NCBI GenBank assembly: GCA_977017575.1
Contig: CDRNVI010000168.1
Location: forward strand, 64,099 to 128,098
Length of the DNA stretch: 64,000 bases
Reading direction: 5' to 3'
Source: Paramoeba atlantica
Lineage: Eukaryota; Protista; Discosea
The notes beneath the pieces were generated by a model. It did no database searches. It had not been told where the DNA came from and saw nothing but the letters and a program-made list of their open reading frames with translations. Made by a program: the position numbers and the translations under genes. Positions 39,100 through 56,016 of the stretch are shown piece after piece (positions within the stretch are counted from its first letter, which is position 1; every line of letters begins with the position of its first letter).

Positions 39100-41085
39100 A
39101 TGACTTCCTTCAAACGCCAACAGTCTGTCGCGATCTATGGTATCGCTGACCAAGATCGATTAGATGGAACACAAGTTGATGCTGAGCAACAAAAAAAGTA
39201 TGAGGAAATTTTAGAGTTGCTTCTTGCTGCTGGATATTTTCGGGCTCGAATCAAAGGTCTTCGTCCTTTTGATAAAGTCATTGGAGGATTGACTTGGAGT
39301 ATTATGAATAGTGCTGTGGATCTCGATGTTGATCTCTTTTTTGAAGAAGGGGCGAAGCTTGGTCAAGAGATCAAACTTGGAGAAGATATTATTCGAACAC
39401 TCCGAAGAATGAAGTGTCCTCATCCTCTCCAATCGAATCAGATCCGAGGTTTAGATTGTGTGAACATCTTTCCTGTTGTTCAATGGTTAGTTAAGAAAGT
39501 GATTGAAACTCGAGAGGAAATGGGAGATCTTCTTCGATCTTTTAGTGTTTATCAGTTTCATCAATCGGATCAACTCCCAGAAGATCGAGCGGCAGAAGAA
39601 CGCCGACCAGCTGCGTCATCTTTTATTGGTGAAGTAGTCGAGCGTTATCAACCTGGACGACAATTTCGAGCCAAAGTTGAATCTGGAAACCAAGATGAAC
39701 GTGTTCAATTGACCTTGTTGGAGTATGGCGATAAATCCGTCTCTGTCGACTTACGTCTTGCAGGCCAGGCACAAAAGAAGACGAAAAAAAGTGCAAGTTT
39801 CGGAGGGAATGTAGCAGCTGCGTCTCTTGGAGCTTCTACTGAAGGAGGTGGAGAAGAAGATTTCTCCTCTCGTTTAGCTGAAGAACAGAAACAAAAGATT
39901 GACAGTCTGATGCAAGGTCTCTCTGCTTTTGAGGGTGATTCATCGAAAGTTTCTGGTGCAAAAGTTGGTGATATTTTGAATTTTCAGTCGAGCGAATTAT
40001 TACAAGTGGTCCAGATGCACGCAGAAGAACATGAAAAGATCAAAGTTAAGTTGGAAGAAATTATGGCTGCAGAAGATTACGCAGATTTGCAACATCGTCG
40101 ACAACTCGAAAAGAGGAAACAAAAGATGGGAAAGTTACAACAACAAATGGAAGAAATTGCGGAAGTTTATAATTCCACCAAATCCGAATTGGAAGAACTT
40201 TCTGAATCTCTTGAGAAGCAACAAAATCTCAACAAAAGGATCGTTGAGGTAATTTTTCTTTTTTTCTCCTCTCTCAATTATTTTTTTAAATCATTTTTTT
40301 TTTTTTGGATATGTCATCCAAAAAAAAAACATATTTTAACACAAAAACAAAAGGAAATTGAGCGATTGAACGCATTGGAGACTCCAGAAAACTCAGACGA
40401 TTTGAAAATGTTGAAAGGTCTTGTTGCTCTCAACGAAAACCTCAAACAACAAGAAAAAGACTTCCGTGCGAGTTGTATTAAAGAGAGAAAGAGACTGCAA
40501 GATCTTTTGGCGAACGATCAACTCTCTCCAGAAGATGAAGAAGAGTTACAGAGGATTGAGATGATTGAGCAAACACATAAAGAAGATTCAGAGAAGTTGA
40601 ATATGTTGAAATCGATGTGCGCGAAGAAGACAAGAGATATTGTGATGGTTAAGAGGAAGATTGACGAAATCCCTTCTCGTACTGAATTAACGCAATACCA
40701 ACAAGCTCTCTTAGATTTATACGAACAAGTTGATGCGAAGTTGAACGAAACAAGGCAATACTTTAGTACCTACAACACGTTGTCGAATACCCTTGAATTC
40801 TGGCAAAGCGAGGTCCAATTGATGGAAAGTATCAGTGGGAACTACAAAATTGCGATGAAAAACGAAAAATCAAGAGAAGCGTTCTTGAAACAATTACAAC
40901 AGAAGTTAGATCTTGTCAAAGAAAATATCGACAAAGCGAACGATCGTTTGGCGAATGAAAAGGGTGCTCTTGAGCTTGTGAAGAAGAAGTACGGAGCTCT
41001 CTTGGAGAAAGAGAGAGCTTACTTTAAAGCAACCAAGGAATTTCAAGAGGAATGTGCATTGAATGAAAAGCTTCGAGGAGAATAA
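39100..41085 (+). CDS. CCDC93: CCDC93 (Commander/CCC complex); intron 40249-40353
   Basis: LLLAAGYFRARIKGL.PFDKVIGG.TW, MKCPH.L...QIRGLD...IFPVVQWLVK, KIDEIPSRTELTQYQ. The 105-nt intron is in frame and stop-free. Confidence 0.93.
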   Translation: MTSFKRQQSVAIYGIADQDRLDGTQVDAEQQKKYEEILELLLAAGYFRARIKGLRPFDKVIGGLTWSIMNSAVDLDVDLFFEEGAKLGQEIKLGEDIIRTLRRMKCPHPLQSNQIRGLDCVNIFPVVQWLVKKVIETREEMGDLLRSFSVYQFHQSDQLPEDRAAEERRPAASSFIGEVVERYQPGRQFRAKVESGNQDERVQLTLLEYGDKSVSVDLRLAGQAQKKTKKSASFGGNVAAASLGASTEGGGEEDFSSRLAEEQKQKIDSLMQGLSAFEGDSSKVSGAKVGDILNFQSSELLQVVQMHAEEHEKIKVKLEEIMAAEDYADLQHRRQLEKRKQKMGKLQQQMEEIAEVYNSTKSELEELSESLEKQQNLNKRIVEVIFLFFSSLNYFFKSFFFFWICHPKKKHILTQKQKEIERLNALETPENSDDLKMLKGLVALNENLKQQEKDFRASCIKERKRLQDLLANDQLSPEDEEELQRIEMIEQTHKEDSEKLNMLKSMCAKKTRDIVMVKRKIDEIPSRTELTQYQQALLDLYEQVDAKLNETRQYFSTYNTLSNTLEFWQSEVQLMESISGNYKIAMKNEKSREAFLKQLQQKLDLVKENIDKANDRLANEKGALELVKKKYGALLEKERAYFKATKEFQEECALNEKLRGE

Positions 41086-41329
41086 TATCTCGTTGGAAGG
41101 ATTGGAAGGGAGAAACAAATAAAAAAGGCTTGAAAATGTGGCTTGAATGTGAGATGAGAAAGTGAGAGTGTTTTTGCTCTCTTTTTTAGCGTTTGTTTAG
41201 AGATCTATTTCTTTTATCTCTTTTTGCTCTTTTTGTTGAGTTTTGTGAAGAAAAGGGTGTTTTGTTTTTTCAAGGAAAGGAAGAAAGAAGAACAACGAAC
41301 CAAAAAAAGAGCAAACAAAAAAAGACATT

Positions 41330-43300
41330 ATGTTTCACCTTAGAAGACCATCAAATCACACTTTCAAATTGTTTTGTCAGTTGATGAAAAAAGAAGATTC
41401 GATTTCTTATTCTTTTCCTCGTTCTCTTCTTTCTTTTCATCCTCAAGCAGCAAAATCGATATCGTCTTCTTCTCCAATTCTCTCTCTTGTTTCTGGTTCA
41501 CCTTCTTCTTCTTCTTCTTTCTCGTTTCTTCCTCCTTCTCTTCCTTCCCTGAGACACACCCAAACCCTCTCCTCTCTGGACAAAACAACAAATAGAATCA
41601 TCGAGTTAAAAGAGCTTCCTCATCGTTGTGACTGGGATCTCGACTCAGAAGGAACTTGGAAATGGAAAGAAGAATCAAAACCCCAAACAATCTTAATTGT
41701 GAAAAGAGAAAAAGATTTAAAGAGCGAAAAAGTTCTGGGGGAGATGTGTGAATGGTTGAAAAAAGAATGGCCAGATGTGAGAGTTTTGGTTGATCCACAG
41801 ACTTTTTCTGATCTTGGTGCTGGGTTTGATCTTGATACGTTTCATTCTCCTCCAATTGATGGTTTTCTCTTCTTTTTTCTTTTCTTTTCTTTTCTTTTCT
41901 CTTTTTCCCCTTGTCTCTCTTCTTTCTCTCTCTCTCTTCTTCTTCTTCATCCTTATCTTAACCCTCAAATCCACAGAGAATGGATTAGAATCAGGGGATC
42001 TCTGCGAAATTGCTCGACAACTCTCTGAAAAAATCGATCTTGTAATCTCTCTTGGTGGTGATGGTACTCTTTTAAGAGCTTGTTCGATGTTTCGAGCTGA
42101 GGTTTTTGGATTTTTTTTTTGTTGTGCTTTGGTTTTGGTTTGTGGAGGGGGTTTTGTGAATCTGGTTTTATGAATTTTGAACTTTTATTTCCTCTTTTTG
42201 AGAAACCCTTTATTACCTTTCTTTTCATGTTAATTAACTGTTCTCTTCTCTCTCTCCCTCTCTCCAAGGTCCCCCCCGTTATAGCATTTCACATGGGAAC
42301 AGTGGGATTTATGACAAATGCTCGAGCTGAAAATTTTAAAGAAGAGATCTCCCGAGTTATGGCTGGGTTCTTTTTTTTTGTCTTTCTCTCCCAAACTTCC
42401 CTGTCTTCATTTTTAATCTCTTTCGGAACTTTCTGACAACAAAAATAGAAATTTTATTTGTTCTTCGAGACAAAGATTAAAGTGTCGTCTTGTTCGAAAT
42501 GATAAACCAATCCATTTGTTTCGTTGTCTCAATGATGTTGCTTTCCACAAGTCTTTTCTCTCTCTTGCTCTTATCGTTTTTTATCCTGTTTTTTTTGTTC
42601 CGTTTGTTTTTTGTTTTTTTCTCTTTAATCTCTGATTTTCTTTTTCCCTTTTTCTCAACCATAGCGGAACAAGACGGTCAATCATGTGTACACTCGATTT
42701 GACTATCAATGGAAGACCTGTCACCACATTGCAAGGTGATGGTCTTGTTATCTCTACTGCAAGTGGATCCACTGCTTACTCTCTTTCTTGTGGAGGTAAT
42801 TGAAAGTTATTTTTAATTTTTTTTTCTCTCTTTTCTTTTTTTAAGATTGATTATGGTTTGAAAAATCTCAAAATTTGCGAATAACTCACCCTTTTTCTTT
42901 TTTCATCTCTCCCTTTAAAAAAAATCAACATTCAGGTCCTGTGATGCACCCAGAATGTACAGGGTTGGTTGTAACACCTATTGCTCCTCGTTCTCTCTCC
43001 TTTCGGCCCATCTTAGTTCCTTGGGATACAGAAATTGTTGTCTCTGAATCTGTTGATAATCGATCAGGTGTTGTTATGATGTCGTTTGATGGGAGACATT
43101 CAGTCCCTTTGCAAAAGGGAGATCACCTCTTTGTATGTTTTTCTTTTCTTTTTTTTTTTCTTAATTTTTTTTCTTATCTTTTCTTCATTGGCTTTCAGGT
43201 TGAAACAACGAGACACTCAGCAAATCTTGTCTGTATTGAGAATTCAATGACAGATTGGCTCCGGGCACTCCAAGGTCGACTTCATTGGAACTTCCAGTAG
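41330..43300 (+). CDS. NADK: NAD(+) kinase, 6 exons
   Basis: VISLGGDGTLL, FHMGTVGFM, LNDV, GDGLVISTASGSTAYSLSCGG, TPIAPRSLSFRP, L.WN. Start codon uncertain. Confidence 0.9.
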
Positions 43301-43465
43301 TAGACCCCTTTCTCTCTCATCCATCACATATGTTCTTTTTCGAGACAAAAACAAAAGGCTCACCTCATGACCCAGAACATCATGAGATGTACTTTTTTTT
43401 TTTAAAGAAGAAGAAAAAACACTTCCTACGAGCTCGCCAAGCTCTTTAACTTAGTTAAAAATATT

Positions 43466-44395
43466 TTATTTTATTTGTGATGGTAATAAGACTGATCTCT
43501 TTGCAATATTTTGTGGATACAAAGGGGGAGCTTGTTGTAATCCAGGACCCAACAATTCCTCCATTCTCTCCAACCAAACCCTCAACTTTCCACCTCTCAA
43601 TGTTTTATTTGAAAATTTGTGAAAGAATTCTTCTTCGCCTATCAACCCTGAACCTTCGACCATGTAGACAAACGCATAAACAGAAATATCATTCAAAGTA
43701 GCTCGATCTCTTTCAAAAAAGAAAGGTCCTTCCCCTAAATACTCGAGCAAATCCTCAACAATTCCGTCTTTCATCCCTTTCAAAGATCCATATTTTTGTT
43801 TCACTTTTTCTCCTTCGGTTTGGATAAACTTGGTTCGGTCTGAGAAACGAAGAATGAGACCCCAAAAAGGACGAATAATCGCAGGAACACCACCAGAAGT
43901 TTTGTTTATCATGCTCGAATAATCCCACGCTAAGTCGAGGGACTTGAAGAATTCTTCGTTTTGGGTCATCAGAAAAAAAAAAGAAGCAAAAAGCGTTTCA
44001 TCTACAAATCCCTTTTCGAAATCCAAGATCTCTTTTTTCGACACTTGATTTTGTTCTTCTGTTGGCAATAATGAATTGGCAGGGAAGAGTTTATCAAGCC
44101 AGACAGCAATGGAAGTCGAATCATCCATCCATTTACAAGTTTTGTTTGTTCCTTCAACGAAAGGTGCTTCATCATCTTCAGACCAACCATCATCGTTCTT
44201 CACCATGACGGCTGGGATCGTTCGGGCATTGAATTCTTTTCCAGTAAAATCCAATTCTTCTTTTGTAAAAGTATTCACATACACAAGTTTAAAGGGGATG
44301 TTCTTCGAGACAAGAGTCCAGTACGTTCGATTTCCAAATGGAGAAGCAGCATAAGTGAAGAATGTAACTTCTTTCTCTCCTTCGTCTGAACTCAT
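43466..44395 (-). CDS. Glutathione S-transferase-fold protein, intronless
   Basis: YAASPF, IPFKLVYVN, TIPAV cis-Pro, DSTSIA.WL, PFFF..ATLNDISVY N-cap motif. Confidence 0.8.
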   Translation of the reverse strand: MSSDEGEKEVTFFTYAASPFGNRTYWTLVSKNIPFKLVYVNTFTKEELDFTGKEFNARTIPAVMVKNDDGWSEDDEAPFVEGTNKTCKWMDDSTSIAVWLDKLFPANSLLPTEEQNQVSKKEILDFEKGFVDETLFASFFFLMTQNEEFFKSLDLAWDYSSMINKTSGGVPAIIRPFWGLILRFSDRTKFIQTEGEKVKQKYGSLKGMKDGIVEDLLEYLGEGPFFFERDRATLNDISVYAFVYMVEGSGLIGEEEFFHKFSNKTLRGGKLRVWLERMEELLGPGLQQAPPLYPQNIAKRSVLLPSQIK

Positions 44396-44644
44396 ATTGA
44401 TCTCGCCGGGAAACTTAAAAAAGAGTCACCCCACGCGTCCTTGACACCTGAAAGAAACTTTCTTCCACTCGGAAAGGAAATTTCATAGGGGACCTAATTC
44501 CGACACTTTGTTCCCCCACAAATTATGACGCAACAAAATGACGCCCCATCCCCTCTCAAAAAGTGTAATTGACGAACAGAGAAAGGTTTTGGAGAAGTCG
44601 GGTGTGAGACAAAGGGAGAAAATTCCGTTTCTTCCTTTCAAATG

Positions 44645-47600
44645 GAGAGCTCTAAAATGAAGAGCTCTAAAATTAAGATCTCTAAAAAATTTGTTTTGTT
44701 TTTTGTGTTGGGGAAAGATGGTTGTGTGGCATCAAACAGAGGACAAGGGTTCAGAGGCTTAGGGTGGCTCAAAGTTTGGAGAAATGGCCAAGAGGACTTT
44801 TTGATTAATTGTTCTGGTTTTTGGTTTTTTATCTTTTTTTGACCAAAGAACATTTTTCCTTTTTCGTTTTGGCGTTCCCAACAAGAGAAAAGGAGGGATA
44901 TGTCTGTGTGTCAAACCTGGGGATTCCTTTGCCCTCTTTTTTTTTAACCAAATAGTCAAAATTAAAACGAAAAATCTTTCCAAAAACATTTCTGGATGGT
45001 TTTTCCATCCGCCTTTAGTTTTCGCTGAAAATTGACGAAAGTGACGCGAACTTTCCTTTTCTTTTGACCCTTTCCGTTTGGTTTTTTTCTTTTTTGCTGT
45101 GGCAACAACCAAGAAAACGACATGAAGTCCCTTTTTTTGTTGTTGTGTCTTTTGTACACTGTTGCTTCTGGTACCTCCACTGTCAAGAACAAGCAAAAGA
45201 TGAGAGACCCTTTGGAGAATCTTCTCGACAAAGCCCAGTTTCAATTGGATTCTTTCCAAAGCGACTTCCCTCCTGCTAACTCGTTATCCAAGCGAGGTTT
45301 TTGCCCCGGTGATGATGGTTTTGAAATCGAACCTTGTGATGGGTGCAGCATTGTCCACAAATGGGCCAATGAGCAGATTGTAACCTATGATGATAGTGAT
45401 GATAGTGATGACGATTTTACCTTTGAAAAAATTGTGACAAAGATTATTTTGGACTTCAAGGACAATAATACACTCACTATTTCCACTGTGTTCACTTTCT
45501 TTCTTTCTGAACAAGCTGGTTATTTTATTTATTTTATTTATTTTATTTTTATTCTTGCTAATTTTTTGTTTAGCTGATCACTACAATGAGTTTGCTGAGG
45601 AACATGATGACTGCTCTGAGATTGACAAAGACAAATACTTCCTTAAGGTGACCCAGAATATTCGATATTCTTATGATTTTGCCGATTGTGATTTGACTTA
45701 TTGTGGGCCAAGTGACACCGATTGCTGGGAATCTAGCGAATCACAAGGGGAACTCTGTGGCTTAGAAAAAATCGATACTGATTTTTCCATCAATGACGAC
45801 TGTGGAGATCTCCCAACTGTCACCTATAATCAAGTTGAATTCCTTGAGGATTGTTCCTTTCTTGACCTATTCCCTGAGACTGATGGTCTTTTTTTCATTT
45901 ATAAAAAAGTGATTGAATCTCCAACTCCAACTCCATCTCCTTCATCACCTTTTTCAATTTCTCCAACACCTTCACCCCCATCACCTTTTTCAATTTCTCC
46001 AACACCGTCACCCCCATCACCATTTTCAATTTCTCCAGCACCTTCACCCTCATCTTCATCTTCGTCTTTTTGGAAATATTTATTATTTTTTGTTGTTGGT
46101 GCGATCGTTGGTTGTCTCCTTGTTTTAATTGTTTTTGGAGTATTTTTTTGGATGAAAAGGAAAAATGAGCAAAAATATCATGATGGTTCAGATTTACTGC
46201 TCAATGACGATGAAGAGGAATATTAATTTCGTTCGATACTCTTTTAATTGAGAGGAACGAATCAAGATTGCAAAGAGAAATTTTGATTAAAATAAAAGGT
46301 CTCTTTCATGTGTAAACTTTAGTGGTTGGAATTTGTCTCAAAGATCCTTCTCTTCAGCTCTTCAAAACCTTTCAACAAAATCGTTGTGTCAAATACACAG
46401 GGTATTGTGCTAAATGAAGAGCTCTAAAAAATTTGTTTTGTTTTTGTGTTTTGGTTTTTTTGTTGGGAAAGATGATGGTTGGTGGGTCAGCATAGTTATC
46501 AACAGAGGACGAGGAATCAAAGGCTTGTGGCTCAAAAAGTCTGGAAACATGGCCAATAGAACTTTTTGATTGGTTGTTCTGGTTTTTGGTTTTTTTTCTT
46601 TTTGACCAAAGAACGTTTTTCCTTTTTCGTTTTGGCGTTCCCAACAAGAGAAAAGGAGGGATAAGTCTGTGTGTCAAATCTGGAGATTCCTTTGCCCTCT
46701 TTTTTTTAACCAAATAGAATATTGGGTGTTATTAACATCCTTTAGACTACAAAAAGTGAGTATTCACTTTTTGGCTCAATTTGCAGCTTCAACAGAATGG
46801 TCCCCTACCCCAACTTATCCTCCTTGGGACATGCCACGGGGGGGTTAATGGTGATTTTGTTGAGCTTTTGTTTCGGGTGTTCCTTTTTGTATGGGGTCGC
46901 TTTTGGGTTTTTGAAAAACCTCAGAGACGAATTTTCCTTCAAAAACCCTTTCGAATTCAAAGACTCCACGAAGGTTTTTATCAGGAGTTTTTTTTTTTGA
47001 AAAACTTGTGACACCCCCTCTGATCACGTGTTCTTTTAAAGTTTTCGCTGAAAACTCAGAAAGCGACAAGAACTTTCCTCAGTTTTTGTTTCGTTTGTTT
47101 TCCATTTGGTTTTTTTCTTTTTTGCTGTGGCAACAACCGAGAAAACGATATGAAGTCCCTTTTGTTGTTGTGTCTGTTGTACACTGTTGCTTCTGGTACC
47201 TTCACTGTCAGGACCAAGCAAAAGATGAGAGACCCTTTGGAGAATCTTCTCGACAAAGCCCAGTTTCGATTGGATTCTTTCCAAAGCGACTTCCCTCCTG
47301 CTAACTCGTTATCCAAGCGAGGTGTTTGCCCCGGTGATGAAGGTTTTAAAATCGAACCTTGTGATGGGTGCAGCATTGTCCACAAATGGGCCAATGAGCA
47401 GATTGAAACCTACGATGATAGTGATGTTCTGTTTGAAAAAATCGTGACAAAGTCTATCTTGGACTTCAAGGACAACAATACACTCACTATTTCCACTGTG
47501 TCCACATTCTTTCTTTCTGAACAAGCTGGTTATTTTATTTATTTTATTTATTTTATTTTTATTATTGCTAATTTTTTGTTTAGCTGATCAATACAATGAG

Positions 47601-50890: not shown

Positions 50891-50946
50891 CGTTTGGTTG
50901 GTTTGGTTTGGCGAGAAAACGAAAACGAAAAAAAAAAGAAAAAATA

Positions 50947-50954
50947 TGACGTCA
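50947..50954. promoter_or_regulatory. CRE-like TGACGTCA 57 bp upstream of the bystin ATG
   Basis: Exact palindrome in a short intergenic region. Confidence 0.4.
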
Positions 50955-51081
50955 TCTTTAGAGAAAAACCATTTATTCCTTTTTTTGGACCTAAATTGTT
51001 GTTGTTTGTTTTTTTGTTTTGCTTCGCCTTGTTTTGTTGTTTCTCTTTTCTTTTCTTTCAATCAAAGTCAGAGATGTTGTA

Positions 51082-51416
51082 TTAGCCACCAAAACCGTAC
51101 AAAGTTTTCCCTTGTCGCTTCAGAGCAAGAATAATGTCCATGGAGGTAACAGTCTTTCTTCGAGCGTACCCTGTGTAAATCACAGCTTCACGAATCACCT
51201 TTTCCAGGAACACCTTCAAGACATTCGAGTTTCTTCGTAAACAAGACCAGAGATTCGTTTCACCCCTCCTCTTCGAGCCAGTCGCCTGATTGATGGTTTG
51301 GTGATCCCTTCAATACGGTCACGAAAACGATATCGAAACCTTCGGTAACGTCTTGCACCCTTCCCCAACCCTTTCCCACCTAACCCTCGGCCAAAAAACT
51401 GATTATTATCATCCAT
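51082..51416 (-). pseudogene. Histone H4 variant copy 3 with a 1-bp deletion (or a sequencing error)
   Basis: aagacattcgag versus aagacacttcgag in copy 2, near 51223. The frame shifts after YEETR; the remainder to LYGFGG* is intact in the other frame. Confidence 0.8.
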
Positions 51417-51644
51417 CGAAACTTGTCAACAAGATTTTAAGAAAAACAAACAAAAATCAGTCCAAAATTGGTAATGCAGCGAGTCGCACCATTCTTGTGT
51501 GAATCTCATGAGCGGTGGAGTGTCGTTCAGTGTGTGTGGGTTGGCAACAATTTCTCTGAAAAGGATTTTTTTTTGGAATAACAAAGTTTATTTATTGGTT
51601 TGGGTTTCGTTGTCTGATCGAAAAATTAAGTTTAGGATATTGTA

Positions 51645-51956
51645 TTAGCCACCAAAACCGTACAAAGTTTTCCCCTGTTGTTTGAGAGCAAGAATAATGT
51701 CCATGGAGGTAACAGTCTTTCTTCGAGCGTACCCTGTGTAAATTACAGCTTCACGAATCACATTTTCAAGAAACACCTTCAAGACACTTCGAGTTTCTTC
51801 ATAAACAAGACCAGAGATTCGTTTCACCCCTCCTCTTCGAGCAAGTCGCCTGATTGATGGTTTGGAAAGGATCAGGTGACAACAACATCGAAACCTTCGG
51901 TGACGTTTTGCACCACCCTTCCCCAACCCTCGTCCAAAAAACTGATTATTATTCAT
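51645..51956 (-). CDS. Histone H4 variant copy 2 (103 aa)
   Basis: [25 protein letters not shown]...KTVTSMD...LYGFGG; divergent tail. Confidence 0.9.
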
Positions 51957-52229
51957 AGCAAATTGTGAACCAATATTTTAAGAAACAAACAAACAATTAG
52001 TCCAAAATTGGGAATGAAGCGAGTCGCACCAATTCTTGTATGAATCTCATGAGCGGAGAGCTACTGTGAGGTTGGCGATCGTTCAGTGTGGGGCTGGCTA
52101 AACGAGCCCACTTTCTGAAAAGCAATCTCTTTTGAAATTGATAAAGTTTATTGGTTTGTGTTTTGTTGTTGGATTGTTGTGCTATTACTTTTACTAATCG
52201 TTCAACAAATCAAGGAAAGAGTGTGTGTA

Positions 52230-52580
52230 TTAGCCATCAAAACTGTACAAAGTTTTCCCTTGTCGCTTCAGAGCACGGATAATGTCCATGGAGGTAACAG
52301 TCTTTCTTCGAGCGTACCCTGTGTAAATCACAGCTTCACGAATCACCTTTTCAAGAAACACCTTCAAGACAGACCGAGTTTCTTCGTAAATTAGACCAGA
52401 GATTCGTTTCACCCCACCTCTTCGAGCAAGTCGCCTGATTGATGGTTTGGTGATCCCTTCAATGCAGTCACGAAAACGAAGATAGCGTAACCTTTGACGG
52501 TACATACCAAAGTTACATTTTGTGCCGATTCCCAACTGTTTCCCTCCTAACCCTCGTCCTTGCTTATTATTATTATTCAT
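52230..52580 (-). CDS. Histone H4 variant copy 1 (116 aa, extended tail)
   Basis: H4 fold as above; MNNNNKQG start at 52580, equivalent to the other copies; ends LYSFDG. Confidence 0.88.
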
Positions 52581-53166
52581 GCGAGATTGTGGACCCTGGA
52601 AGTTTTTTTTTTGTGAGACGAACGACCAGCCCAAAATTGGGAATGAAGCGAGTCGCACCATTCTTGTATGAATCTTATGAGCGAAGAATTGTGAGGTTGG
52701 CGAATGTAACTCACCTTAAGGAAGAAATCCTTTGTCCTGACTCTGGTGGATGAAAAAATTCCCCTGAAAACTATTTGGGTTGGTGGAAAAACATTTGTTT
52801 ATTTTCTTTGGTCTTGACTAAATGACACCAACTCAAACGTGCCAACTGAACTCAAATAAAATCAAAAAACAAGATGGTAACAAGAAAGACAAAGGGTTAG
52901 AAAACGATTTGTTTCAAAAAAGAATGAGTTTGAACCAACTTTTTCGAAAGTCATTCAGTGAAGAAATAAAAACGACGAAAATGAAAAATTGGTTCTCGCA
53001 ACACTCCCCCAGCAACGAGAGGAGAGTCCGTTTTTAGCGGCTTCTTTTTTGTGAAATTTTGCTCTGAAGGAAAGGACAGAAGAAACTTCTTCTCTTTTTT
53101 CTTCTCTTGACGTTTTCGGAGTTAGTCAAAAAAAAAAACGAGTTTGTTTGCCGATTTTGTGAAAAC

Positions 53167-54230
53167 ATGGCAAATTCTCGCCCTTACCAAATCGATGTGG
53201 TATCTTTAGCTGGAAGAAGGACGAGTTTGGATGTCACTTCTGGAACAACGGTTGCTAATGTGATGCGACAGTACCAAGACAAGGAAGGGGTTCCTGTTAA
53301 CCAACAGCGCCTCGTTTGGGCCGGAGCACAAATCTCTTCGGGGGATCGATCAAGGACACTTCAATCTCTGAACATCGGCGAAGGAAGTGTCATTCATCTC
53401 GTATTGACTTTAAGGGATATTGGAATGTTTGATCTTCATATTGCGACTCCTGGTGTCGAACTCCTCCAAACACCGAAGAATTGGAGTGGTGGAGAATTGG
53501 AAATGAAGGAAATTATCCAAAAAGTGAAGGAGAACAAAAGAGTACTGCGAAGGAATCTCAAGTCAAATCATTTTGAATCATATTCTTCAACATCATCAAG
53601 GGATGGTGATGATGATGAGGAGTCCTCAAGATTATTGTTGTCGAAAGAAGAGTGTCAAATTTTGAAGGATTTCTTAGATCGAAAATTCTTTGAATGGGAG
53701 AGTGAACAATGTGACGAAGGGTCAGCAAAGAAGGAGGATTTTCAAATCACAATTGAGGAAGAAGAACTTTCGACTCTGATTGGAGAACAAACAACACGTA
53801 AACTGATCACCTTTTTCAAGGGTCCTTTCACAGAGATTAAATTGAGAAGGGTTAATTCTCATGGAAAATGCATTAACTTCCATTTGGATGTCTCTCTTCG
53901 GACAATGCAGGTTCCTCTCAACAGTGATCAGGTGATTTTTTTCATTTATTTTGTTGATTGTGATCTCTCCCAAATATCTCGATATGTGTATGTGTTGATT
54001 TTCTTTTTTGACTCTTTTTTGACTCTTCTTTTTCCCCAAAATCCCAGGAATATGATGGAGGGCGTCTCGTTTACTTAATTGAAGATCATCAAGCTGAAAG
54101 AACTGGAAAAGTTGAGATTCCTTCTCGGCCTGCAGGATCATGGACAATTCATGACAACACGATTGTCCATGGAGTGACCACTCTGGCATCAGGGATTCGA
54201 TATGCCCTCTTTTTTCTTCAATACCCATAA
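53167..54230 (+). CDS. Ubiquitin-like domain fused to a 2OG-Fe(II) oxygenase; intron 53932-54047
   Basis: Ub fold (QDKEGVPVNQQRLVWAG...IHLVLTLR); HxD (FHLD), EYDGGRL, distal His VHGVT, GIRYAL Arg. Confidence 0.85.
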
Positions 54231-54708
54231 CTCTTTCCAATGTTTTCGAACGCATTATCTTCCCAATAAAATGACTTTTTCAAAAACAAAATTTAAGTCT
54301 TTCTCTTGAAGCCATTGTCTCCTATCTTTTCTTCCTTCATCGCGACCACCACCCAAACCATTCTTCTTCTTTGGGCAAAAGTTTCTGAGTCTTGAGAAGG
54401 GAGCGGAAATCACTAACCAAAAATTCGTATTCGTCTTGTGCAAGTTCAGAATGAGACTGTCCTTTCTCTGTTTTTGGTTATTGTTTTCATCATCAGAATG
54501 TTTGAATCGAGGTTTTTTTTCTTTTTCTCATCCAACTTGAGAGAACAGCCTCAGAGAGAATCTTTTCGTCAGAACAGAGATTATCAAATTTCCACCTGAA
54601 CTTTCTCAGTTTCCGATCTCTTGTTTTGGACAAAAAAGCTAATTTGTGACAATTTTTTCCGCGCTGTTTTGGGGCAAAATTTCCCTCTTGGTGATTTCCT
54701 CGCGGGAG

Positions 54709-56016
54709 ATGGCCTTGTTTGACGCATTGAAAAAACAGGCACAAGAGAGAGAGATCAGTTCTGGAAATCCTCCTGGGCTGTCTGATGAGTTGAGAAAACA
54801 GAGAGAGACAGAAGAGAAGTATGCACAACTTCAAGAGCTCGAACTCCGCTTACTGGATGAGCTGGTTGAAATAAATCTCAGTGAAGAGGAGTTCCAAGAA
54901 GATGCTATTGCCAATTTGGAGCGACGTCTTTCGAAGGTGCAATCTACATTGAAGTTTTTGAAACAGAGATTGGATCGTGAAGAGAGCTCTTCCTCGAGAG
55001 GAGCTGGCTCAGGTGTTGGAGGAAATTTTAGGGTTGCTGGAAAACCATTGCCAAAGTTGGAAGAGAAAGAGGATGATCCTCATCCTCTTTTCACTAGGTT
55101 GAAAAAACAAGCTGACCAAGGGATAGGTTCTAGTATCCCCCCGGCAAATCCGAGCGCTGATTCGAAACCAACCATCGTGAACACAGACCAGGTGTGGGAG
55201 ATTGGACTGTTTGATTTTCATATTGCGGCTCCTGGTGTCGAACTCCTCCAAACACCGAAGAATTGGAGTGGTGGAGAATTGGAAGTGAAGGAAATTATCC
55301 AAAAAGTGAAGGAGAACCATAGAGGGCCAGTGAGAAATCTCGAGTCAAATCAGTTTGAATCATATTCTTCATCAAGGGATGAGGATGATGATGAGGATGA
55401 GGAGTCCTCAAGATTATTGTTGTCGAAAGAAGAGTGTCAAATTTTGAAGGATTTCTTAGATCGAAAATTCTTTGAATGGGAGAGTGAAGAACAATGCGAC
55501 GAAGGGTCAGCAAGGAAGGGGGATTTTCAAGTCACAATTAAGGAAGAAGAACTTTTGACTCTGATTGGAGAACAAACAACACGTAAACTGATCACCTTTT
55601 TCAAGGGTCCTTTCACAGAGATCAGATTGAGAAGGGTTAATTCTCATGGAAAATGCATTAACTTCCATTTGGATGTCTCTCTTCGGACAATGCAGGTTCC
55701 TCTCAACAGTGATCAGGTGATTTTTTTCATTTATTTTGTTGATTGTGATCTCTCCCAAATATCTCGATATGTGTATGTGTTGATTTTCTTTTTTGACTCT
55801 TTTTTGACTCTTCTTTTTCCCCCAAAATCCCAGGAATATGATGGAGGGCGTCTCGTTTACTTAATTGAAGATCATCAAGCTGAAAGAACTGGAAAAGTTG
55901 AGATTCCTTCTCGGCCTGCAGGATCATGGACAATTCATGACAACACGATTGTCCATGGAGTGACCACTCTGGCATCAGGGATTCGATATGCCCTCTTTTT
56001 TCGTCAATGTCCATAA
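54709..56016 (+). CDS. Coiled-coil protein fused to the same 2OG-Fe(II) oxygenase; intron 55717-55833
   Basis: Oxygenase region near-identical to the previous gene; unrelated N-terminus. The 117-nt intron versus 116 nt in the paralogue shows it is an intron. Confidence 0.85.
   Translation: MALFDALKKQAQEREISSGNPPGLSDELRKQRETEEKYAQLQELELRLLDELVEINLSEEEFQEDAIANLERRLSKVQSTLKFLKQRLDREESSSSRGAGSGVGGNFRVAGKPLPKLEEKEDDPHPLFTRLKKQADQGIGSSIPPANPSADSKPTIVNTDQVWEIGLFDFHIAAPGVELLQTPKNWSGGELEVKEIIQKVKENHRGPVRNLESNQFESYSSSRDEDDDEDEESSRLLLSKEECQILKDFLDRKFFEWESEEQCDEGSARKGDFQVTIKEEELLTLIGEQTTRKLITFFKGPFTEIRLRRVNSHGKCINFHLDVSLRTMQVPLNSDQVIFFIYFVDCDLSQISRYVYVLIFFFDSFLTLLFPPKSQEYDGGRLVYLIEDHQAERTGKVEIPSRPAGSWTIHDNTIVHGVTTLASGIRYALFFRQCP

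Follow-up and report, generated by a model that had tools for sequence, protein, structure and literature searches.

A tandem trio of divergent histone H4 genes in a Paramoeba-related amoeba

The array and its surroundings

Three histone H4-like reading frames lie head to tail on the minus strand of a 64,000-nt stretch of the Paramoeba atlantica contig CDRNVI010000168.1 (hereafter the window, whose positions are used throughout), in a repeat unit of 563–585 bp. The genes and the elements that precede them are the following.

51082–51416, minus strand: H4 variant copy 1, seen both among the listed ORFs and in the sequence itself; its frame is broken in the window strain by the loss of 1 bp
51459–51515, minus strand: upstream element (~57 nt) of copy 1, found by alignment, as repeat families D4 and D5 and by pattern search
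51645–51956, minus strand: H4 variant copy 2, an intact ORF of 103 aa with scrambled residues 23–30 and R92Q
51999–52056, minus strand: upstream element of copy 2, which has 1 nt inserted when compared with those of copies 1 and 3
52230–52580, minus strand: H4 variant copy 3, an intact ORF of 116 aa with tail insertions, Y88R, G99S and G101D
52628–52684, minus strand: upstream element of copy 3, with an internal ATG that shares the H4 reading frame in each strain

A sequence-only reading had placed tandem H4 variants at 51082–52580, and the three minus-strand frames confirm it. In phmmer against PDB chains, copy 3 matches histone H4 at E ~1e-37, with a best value of 8e-38, and retrieves 89 H4 chains at E ≤1e-10, the alignment spanning its residues 5–116; its aligned identity to canonical H4s is 73–76%. 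Pfam histone-fold families match the copies with scores under the gathering cut-off, as is usual for H4. The AlphaFold2 monomer of copy 3 is a model of too low confidence to be relied on (mean pLDDT 53, pTM 0.25), with helices at the positions expected for α1, α2 and α3. A motif scan of the window in all six frames gave no core histone gene beyond these three.

The unique parts of the array have a depth of 64–69 in DNA run X1, against 66–71 in the flanks, and this equality indicates three copies and no hidden extra ones. Contig joints that bypass the array (50726>52854, in runs X1 and X3, and others) are probably spurious; they are treated so because their matching sides are short (~21–22 nt) and of low complexity and because the array depth equals that of the flanks. 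The 50726>52854 joint carries 22 foreign letters in both runs.

The DNA is assigned to the nucleus of the host, a dactylopodid amoeba resembling Paramoeba. It is not that of the kinetoplastid endosymbiont, which is intron-free (PMC5601477), since RNA contigs reveal GT..AG introns of 77 and 116 nt adjoining the array. The neighbouring CCDC93 gene (39100–41085) also argues for the host: a Paramoeba aestuarina protein matches it at 69% identity, followed among named sequences by animals and Balamuthia at 36–43%. A viral or otherwise foreign origin of the array is rejected, since its GC3 (0.35–0.40) is that of the neighbouring genes and the variant motif is absent from viral contigs.

The ~57-nt element precedes each H4 ATG and is conserved as strongly as the coding sequence. 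In the window it occurs only in the three H4 units (pattern search, with 0 matches expected by chance). It contains an imperfect palindrome followed by AATTTTGG and is a candidate promoter or 5′ leader. In copy 3 its ATG stays in frame although the two strains differ there by indels of 1 bp and 8 bp. Two other identities were considered. A structured RNA or an SL/snRNA gene, with AATTTTGG as an Sm-like motif, is rejected: there is no Rfam match and the folds have z-scores of –0.4 to 0 relative to shuffled sequences. An upstream exon with an intron at the start codon (ATG|GTGCGA ... CAG|) is unsupported, the ATG being destroyed in copy 2 and the frame meeting a stop in copy 1. At the other gene end, AATAAA-like motifs lie downstream of the stop codons of copies 2 and 3, and the region 50900–52900 yields no metazoan-type histone 3′ stem-loop, with neither a Histone3 nor any other Rfam match at E up to 1.

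Beside the array, the plus strand carries two adjacent paralogues (53107–54078 and 54646–56016) with nearly identical C-terminal halves and different N-terminal modules, ubiquitin-like in one case and coiled-coil in the other. RNA contigs place the 116-nt GT..AG intron at 53929–54044 in this region. In contigs from runs X1 and X2, position 54359 is followed directly by 54600, so that 240 bp between the two genes (54360–54599) are left out, which looks like a presence/absence polymorphism.

Substitutions in the histone fold and the tails

Residue numbering is anchored on K44 of the KRISG motif. In the resulting alignment all three copies have A33S, D68E, T71I, E74G, H75Y, A83S, V86I, V87I and R95K, and Y88 is replaced by L in copies 1 and 2 and by R in copy 3. 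Arginine at position 77 is likewise found in all copies and counts as K77R only relative to animal H4. The substitutions that the sequence-only reading had listed as common to the copies are therefore all recovered, with A33S to be added. Other changes are partial: Q27E and N64K in copies 1 and 3, I50V in copies 1 and 2, R92Q in copy 2, and G99S with G101D in copy 3, the C-terminus of which reads LYSFDG. Conservation is equally uneven. Residues 31–63, devoted to H3 pairing and DNA contact and including R35, R36, R39, K44 and R45, are canonical except at 33, 50 and 56, which agrees with the earlier description of residues 34–63 as almost canonical. No copy has lost Y72, K91 or Y98, and R92 has changed only in copy 2.

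Of the ten fold substitutions common to the copies, nine lie within residues 68–95 (p ~0.0013 under a uniform expectation). Their rarity was judged against the 256 other H4 proteins returned by two database searches. T71, E74 and H75 are invariant in this set, V86 is present in 254 and Y88 in 247, and the replacements T71I, E74G, H75Y, V86I and Y88L are absent from it. By contrast with these truly unusual changes, K77R, A83S and R95K are ordinary H4 polymorphisms, since 165 of the 256 proteins have R77, 36 have K95 and 11 have S83. The canonical H4 of two related amoeba assemblies (L005 and L006) already carries R77 and S83. The list of the sequence-only reading thus mixes lineage background with the unusual replacements at 71, 74, 75, 86 and 88. 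Both relatives encode a fully canonical H4 with a normal tail, and L006 comes from the same assembly as an orthologue of the CCDC93 gene (L004, 74% identity).

Structural studies help to read this cluster. H75 of H4 is buried and hydrogen-bonds to H2B (PMC6698655), Y88 stacks on Y83 of H2B, and the main salt bridge links R92 of H4 to E76 of H2B; the H4–H2B binding energy comes to a large extent from H75 and R92, and T71 figures in the same analysis of energies (bioRxiv 10.1101/2025.02.14.638149). The placing of H75 and Y88 in the H2B contact, stated in the earlier reading, is thus supported by published work (bioRxiv 10.1101/2025.02.14.638149; PMC6698655), and because H75, Y88 and R92 all belong to this contact, altered docking of H2A–H2B by the variant H4 is plausible. 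The interface would be repacked rather than destroyed, with an aromatic residue gained at 75 and one lost at 88, and Y72, K91 and Y98 retained. The H2B interface is not the sole possible reading, since H4 residues 64–80 also form much of the LRS surface around K79 of H3 (PMC6698655). The proposed focus of the changes on the H4–H2B interface therefore holds as a clustering in C-terminal α2, L2 and α3, and fails as an exclusive description: part of the cluster is shared with the LRS, and the tails are changed more.

The N-terminal tails are the most divergent part of all copies and differ by in-frame indels. Ahead of GRG, every copy has an extra M(D)DNN/MNNN extension. Copy 1 further has K5L, K16R, H18Y, K20R and an insertion; copy 2 is shorter by about five residues and shows K20R; in copy 3, insertions accompany K5L and K12I. 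No copy presents the canonical combination of an SGRGK start, lysines 5, 8, 12, 16 and 20 and the basic patch 16–20. Most acetylatable lysines are missing and an arginine-rich patch remains. Every indel that separates copies 1 and 3 has a length divisible by three; those with copy 2 are ambiguous and net in-frame. In copy 2, CCCHLILS replaces residues 23–30 with a net deletion of 9 nt, disrupting the entry to α1. This scrambled stretch may go back to a micro-inversion, of which a 10-nt reverse-complement match (one mismatch) surrounding a palindromic GATC gives a weak hint.

A side observation concerns two metagenomic canonical H4 genes (L002, 530–625; L003, 385–480), which contain a spliceosomal intron in the tail after GRGKG. 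The 3′ end of this intron (ATG TAT AAC AAT AAT CCAG) resembles the MNNNQ start of the variants in the array, a likeness that may be due to chance in AT-rich sequence. These genes have GC-rich codons and no tie of theirs to the amoeba lineage was made.

Constraint, expression and strain polymorphism

Over 72 codons of the fold, dN/dS (Nei–Gojobori) is 0.12 between copies 1 and 2 and 0.28 for copies 1 and 3 as well as 2 and 3, values that derive from small counts and that gene conversion between copies could blur. On the three-branch tree there are ~8.5 non-synonymous and 12 synonymous events, against ~34 non-synonymous events predicted by neutrality (binomial p ~0.001–0.002). Copy 3 has the highest non-synonymous rate among the three. 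When canonical H4 from the two relatives serves as the reference, synonymous change has reached saturation (pS 0.70–0.82) and dN is 0.11–0.14. Such saturation, in frames that are still open, points to an old variant lineage.

Comparison with a second assembly of the same species (L001; ENA ERZ24900291), 98–99.97% identical to the window, leads in the same direction. All three H4 ORFs are open in L001. Between the strains there is no SNP in 647 fold bases, the chance of zero being ~0.0013; the non-coding bases show 9 SNPs and 2 indels in 874, and the tails 4 SNPs in 342 bases, three of them non-synonymous. The copy 2 allele of L001 (P0008) is 98% identical, with 3 SNPs that all lie within the scrambled stretch, two being non-synonymous. 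At the level of sequence comparison, the histone fold is shown to have been kept under purifying selection since the triplication, so that the copies are not simply neutral.

Expression was recorded in run X5, which is taken as RNA from its two spliced joints. A 256-nt contig covers 52279–52534 in copy 3 with 0 mismatches and a depth of 9.8, neighbouring genes having depths of 5–15; there is no depth on the flanking intergenic DNA nor on copies 1 and 2. The contig establishes the presence of copy 3 in RNA and not its level, and does not imply silence of the other two. The sequence-only reading had named silence and neutral evolution of the copies as evidence against it. Neutrality is contradicted by dN/dS values below the neutral level in the fold, and silence by the RNA contig as far as copy 3 is concerned; copies 1 and 2 are without such a contig.

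In the window strain, the T-run at 51224–51225 lacks 1 bp, a deletion that breaks copy 1 into two frames. In L001 (10541–10876), which represents another strain or haplotype, it is intact and encodes a protein of 111 aa (P0040). The extra base is found in 0 of 65.6 in DNA run X1 and 0 of 31.5 in X3, and in 4.5 of 4.5 in X2, which shares the other differences of L001. Run X1 may be the source sample of the window assembly and so is not independent support for the deletion. Since the DNA contigs of X1 and X3 carry the deletion and X2 has the base, the frameshift is a real strain polymorphism. Its occurrence in one strain indicates that the copies are individually dispensable, as in birth-and-death turnover. 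Identity between L001 and the window is itself mosaic, reaching 99.97% across 6.4 kb (39928–46357) and 96–98% across the adjoining 9 kb that include the array, which suggests recombining haplotypes or strains.

Beyond these two strains the family is, as far as databases show, restricted to one species. A search of 5.8 billion proteins gave identities above 82% for P0008 and P0040 alone, both alleles from the same species; the best matches otherwise are canonical-type H4s at ≤82%, and none of 1.84 billion representatives exceeds 79%. Two degenerate-motif scans found no orthologue in JGI metagenomes, and viral contigs did not contain the variant motif. The related-species contig L004 is syntenic with the window only over 36.9–41.1 kb, loses synteny ~10 kb before the array and carries no H4; when the flanking dioxygenase gene served as query, no relative's long contig came up.

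Interpretation and relation to known H4 variants

Taken together, the data make it probable that the array is a lineage-specific, selected and partly redundant H4 variant family in a Paramoeba-related dactylopodid amoeba. Its status as 'variant' rests on the canonical H4 genes of two related species (L005 and L006). The family is new, is under birth-and-death turnover and is partly decaying.

Decay raises the question whether the array is just a relic, made of (nearly) non-functional H4 pseudogenes in which a young duplication or gene conversion mimics constraint. The real frameshift of copy 1 in the window strain, the scrambled stretch of copy 2 and the damaged C-terminus of copy 3 would fit such a relic, as would the low RNA support (one contig, in one run, for copy 3), the lack of orthologues found elsewhere and the three non-synonymous changes among four inter-strain coding SNPs. 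Yet dN/dS of 0.12–0.28 deviates from neutrality (p ~0.001), and this ratio is not one that gene conversion reduces. Despite saturated synonymous divergence from the relatives' canonical H4, the reading frames have stayed open and the indels of the tails are in frame, the fold has 0 SNPs in 647 bases against 1% in spacers, and the upstream element is as conserved as the coding sequence. The array does not have the features of processed or decayed pseudogenes either, only copy 1 being disrupted, in this strain, and ω lying well below 1. A relic is on this balance unlikely. That the three copies could be the ordinary H4 genes of an organism with a divergent lineage H4 is scarcely credible: it draws on the fact that the canonical references come from relatives and not from this organism, and it runs against the fully canonical, normally tailed H4 of two related assemblies (one holding the CCDC93 orthologue at 74% identity), the mutual differences of the copies in the tail, the frameshift in one of them and an RNA depth like that of the neighbours and unlike that of bulk histones.

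Histone-fold proteins that function outside nucleosomes are a further alternative, with another partner (for instance a variant H3 or a different histone-fold protein) or a role outside host chromatin, such as delivery to the kinetoplastid endosymbiont. The parts that are changed, i.e. the H2B-docking residues and the tail, are those that define nucleosomal behaviour, and the Pfam core histone score under the gathering cut-off, though usual for H4, goes the same way. Against this, the H3-pairing and DNA-contact half is nearly unchanged, including the R35/R36/R39/R45 region, K91, Y72 and Y98 have not changed in any copy and R92 is replaced only in copy 2, and the copies share no conserved targeting extension; a non-nucleosomal function appears improbable. 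Equally speculative, and to be entertained with much reserve, is an elaborate version of the variant reading, in which an orthogonal H4 encoded by these genes and an H2B partner dedicated to it would have evolved together, H75Y and Y88L/R re-keying the H4–H2B bundle; with its non-acetylatable tail, this H4 would form a separate nucleosome class for a particular state of the amoeba or for its dealings with the endosymbiont.

For the favoured reading, that of a selected variant family, the following history may be proposed. An old H4 duplicate would have gained a burst of changes in C-terminal α2, L2 and α3, a region covering the H2B four-helix-bundle contacts H75 and Y88 (and R92 in copy 2) together with the LRS surface. 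It would have lost the constraint on its N-terminal tail and then undergone tandem triplication with its own ~57-nt upstream element. The protein would pair normally with H3, because residues 31–63 are canonical, and would offer a repacked face to H2A–H2B and a tail unable to carry the usual K5/K8/K12/K16/K20 marks. Such variants would mark a minor, low-abundance nucleosome class with altered dimer binding and tail signalling. Their mRNAs would be devoid of the metazoan-type histone 3′ stem-loop and present at ordinary, not bulk-histone, levels.

H4 is the slowest-evolving core histone. To our knowledge its sequence variants are few, namely the trypanosomatid H4.V, the ascomycete H4E, the hominid H4G and forms from Oikopleura and ciliates. 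The amoeba family constitutes a natural experiment among them, with the H3 side intact, T71, E74 and H75 substituted at the H2B/LRS face and the tail drifting, and is relevant to the question of which partner constrains which region of H4. It is of moderate general importance, given a little-studied amoeba, one species so far and partial decay. Orthology to H4E, H4G or H4.V is not found, the best matches being canonical-type H4s.

In behaviour the closest analogue is H4E. This variant (hheA) combines a conserved fold with a lysine-poor divergent tail, is expressed at low level or conditionally and has no knockout phenotype (PMC10878826). Like it, the amoeba genes are lineage-restricted H4 paralogues with a conserved fold, a divergent tail that has lost most modifiable lysines and a recognisable basic patch. 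H4E, however, exists as one gene copy, is conserved throughout a subphylum, and has a distinctive intron pattern and longer tails at both ends (PMC10878826), whereas the amoeba genes are a tandem trio in one species, with no evident intron and with H2B-contact residues of α2 and α3 also changed.

H4G and the amoeba family arose independently. H4G reportedly makes less stable nucleosomes. Both are lineage-specific H4 variants, H4G being a young one of ~85% identity, and the changes of H4G also concern the C-terminal region that meets the H2A–H2B dimer (PMC10878826). H4G is C-terminally truncated and nucleolar, whereas in the amoeba the C-terminus is complete in copies 1 and 2 and H75 and Y88 are replaced in every copy. 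The trypanosomatid H4.V is likewise a variant of a single lineage, encoded apart from the canonical arrays and with a genomic distribution distinct from that of canonical H4 (PMC13052989); it belongs to the already divergent kinetoplastid histones, and searches gave no sequence relationship between it and the amoeba copies. Finally, the testis-specific H4 of Oikopleura dioica is a stage-restricted form, the changes of which affect contact with the H2A–H2B dimer (cited in PMC10878826). Only three residues differ in it, located in the basic patch of the tail that meets the acidic patch (PMC10878826), whereas in the amoeba copies 15–19 residues differ from position 24 on, in addition to the whole tail.
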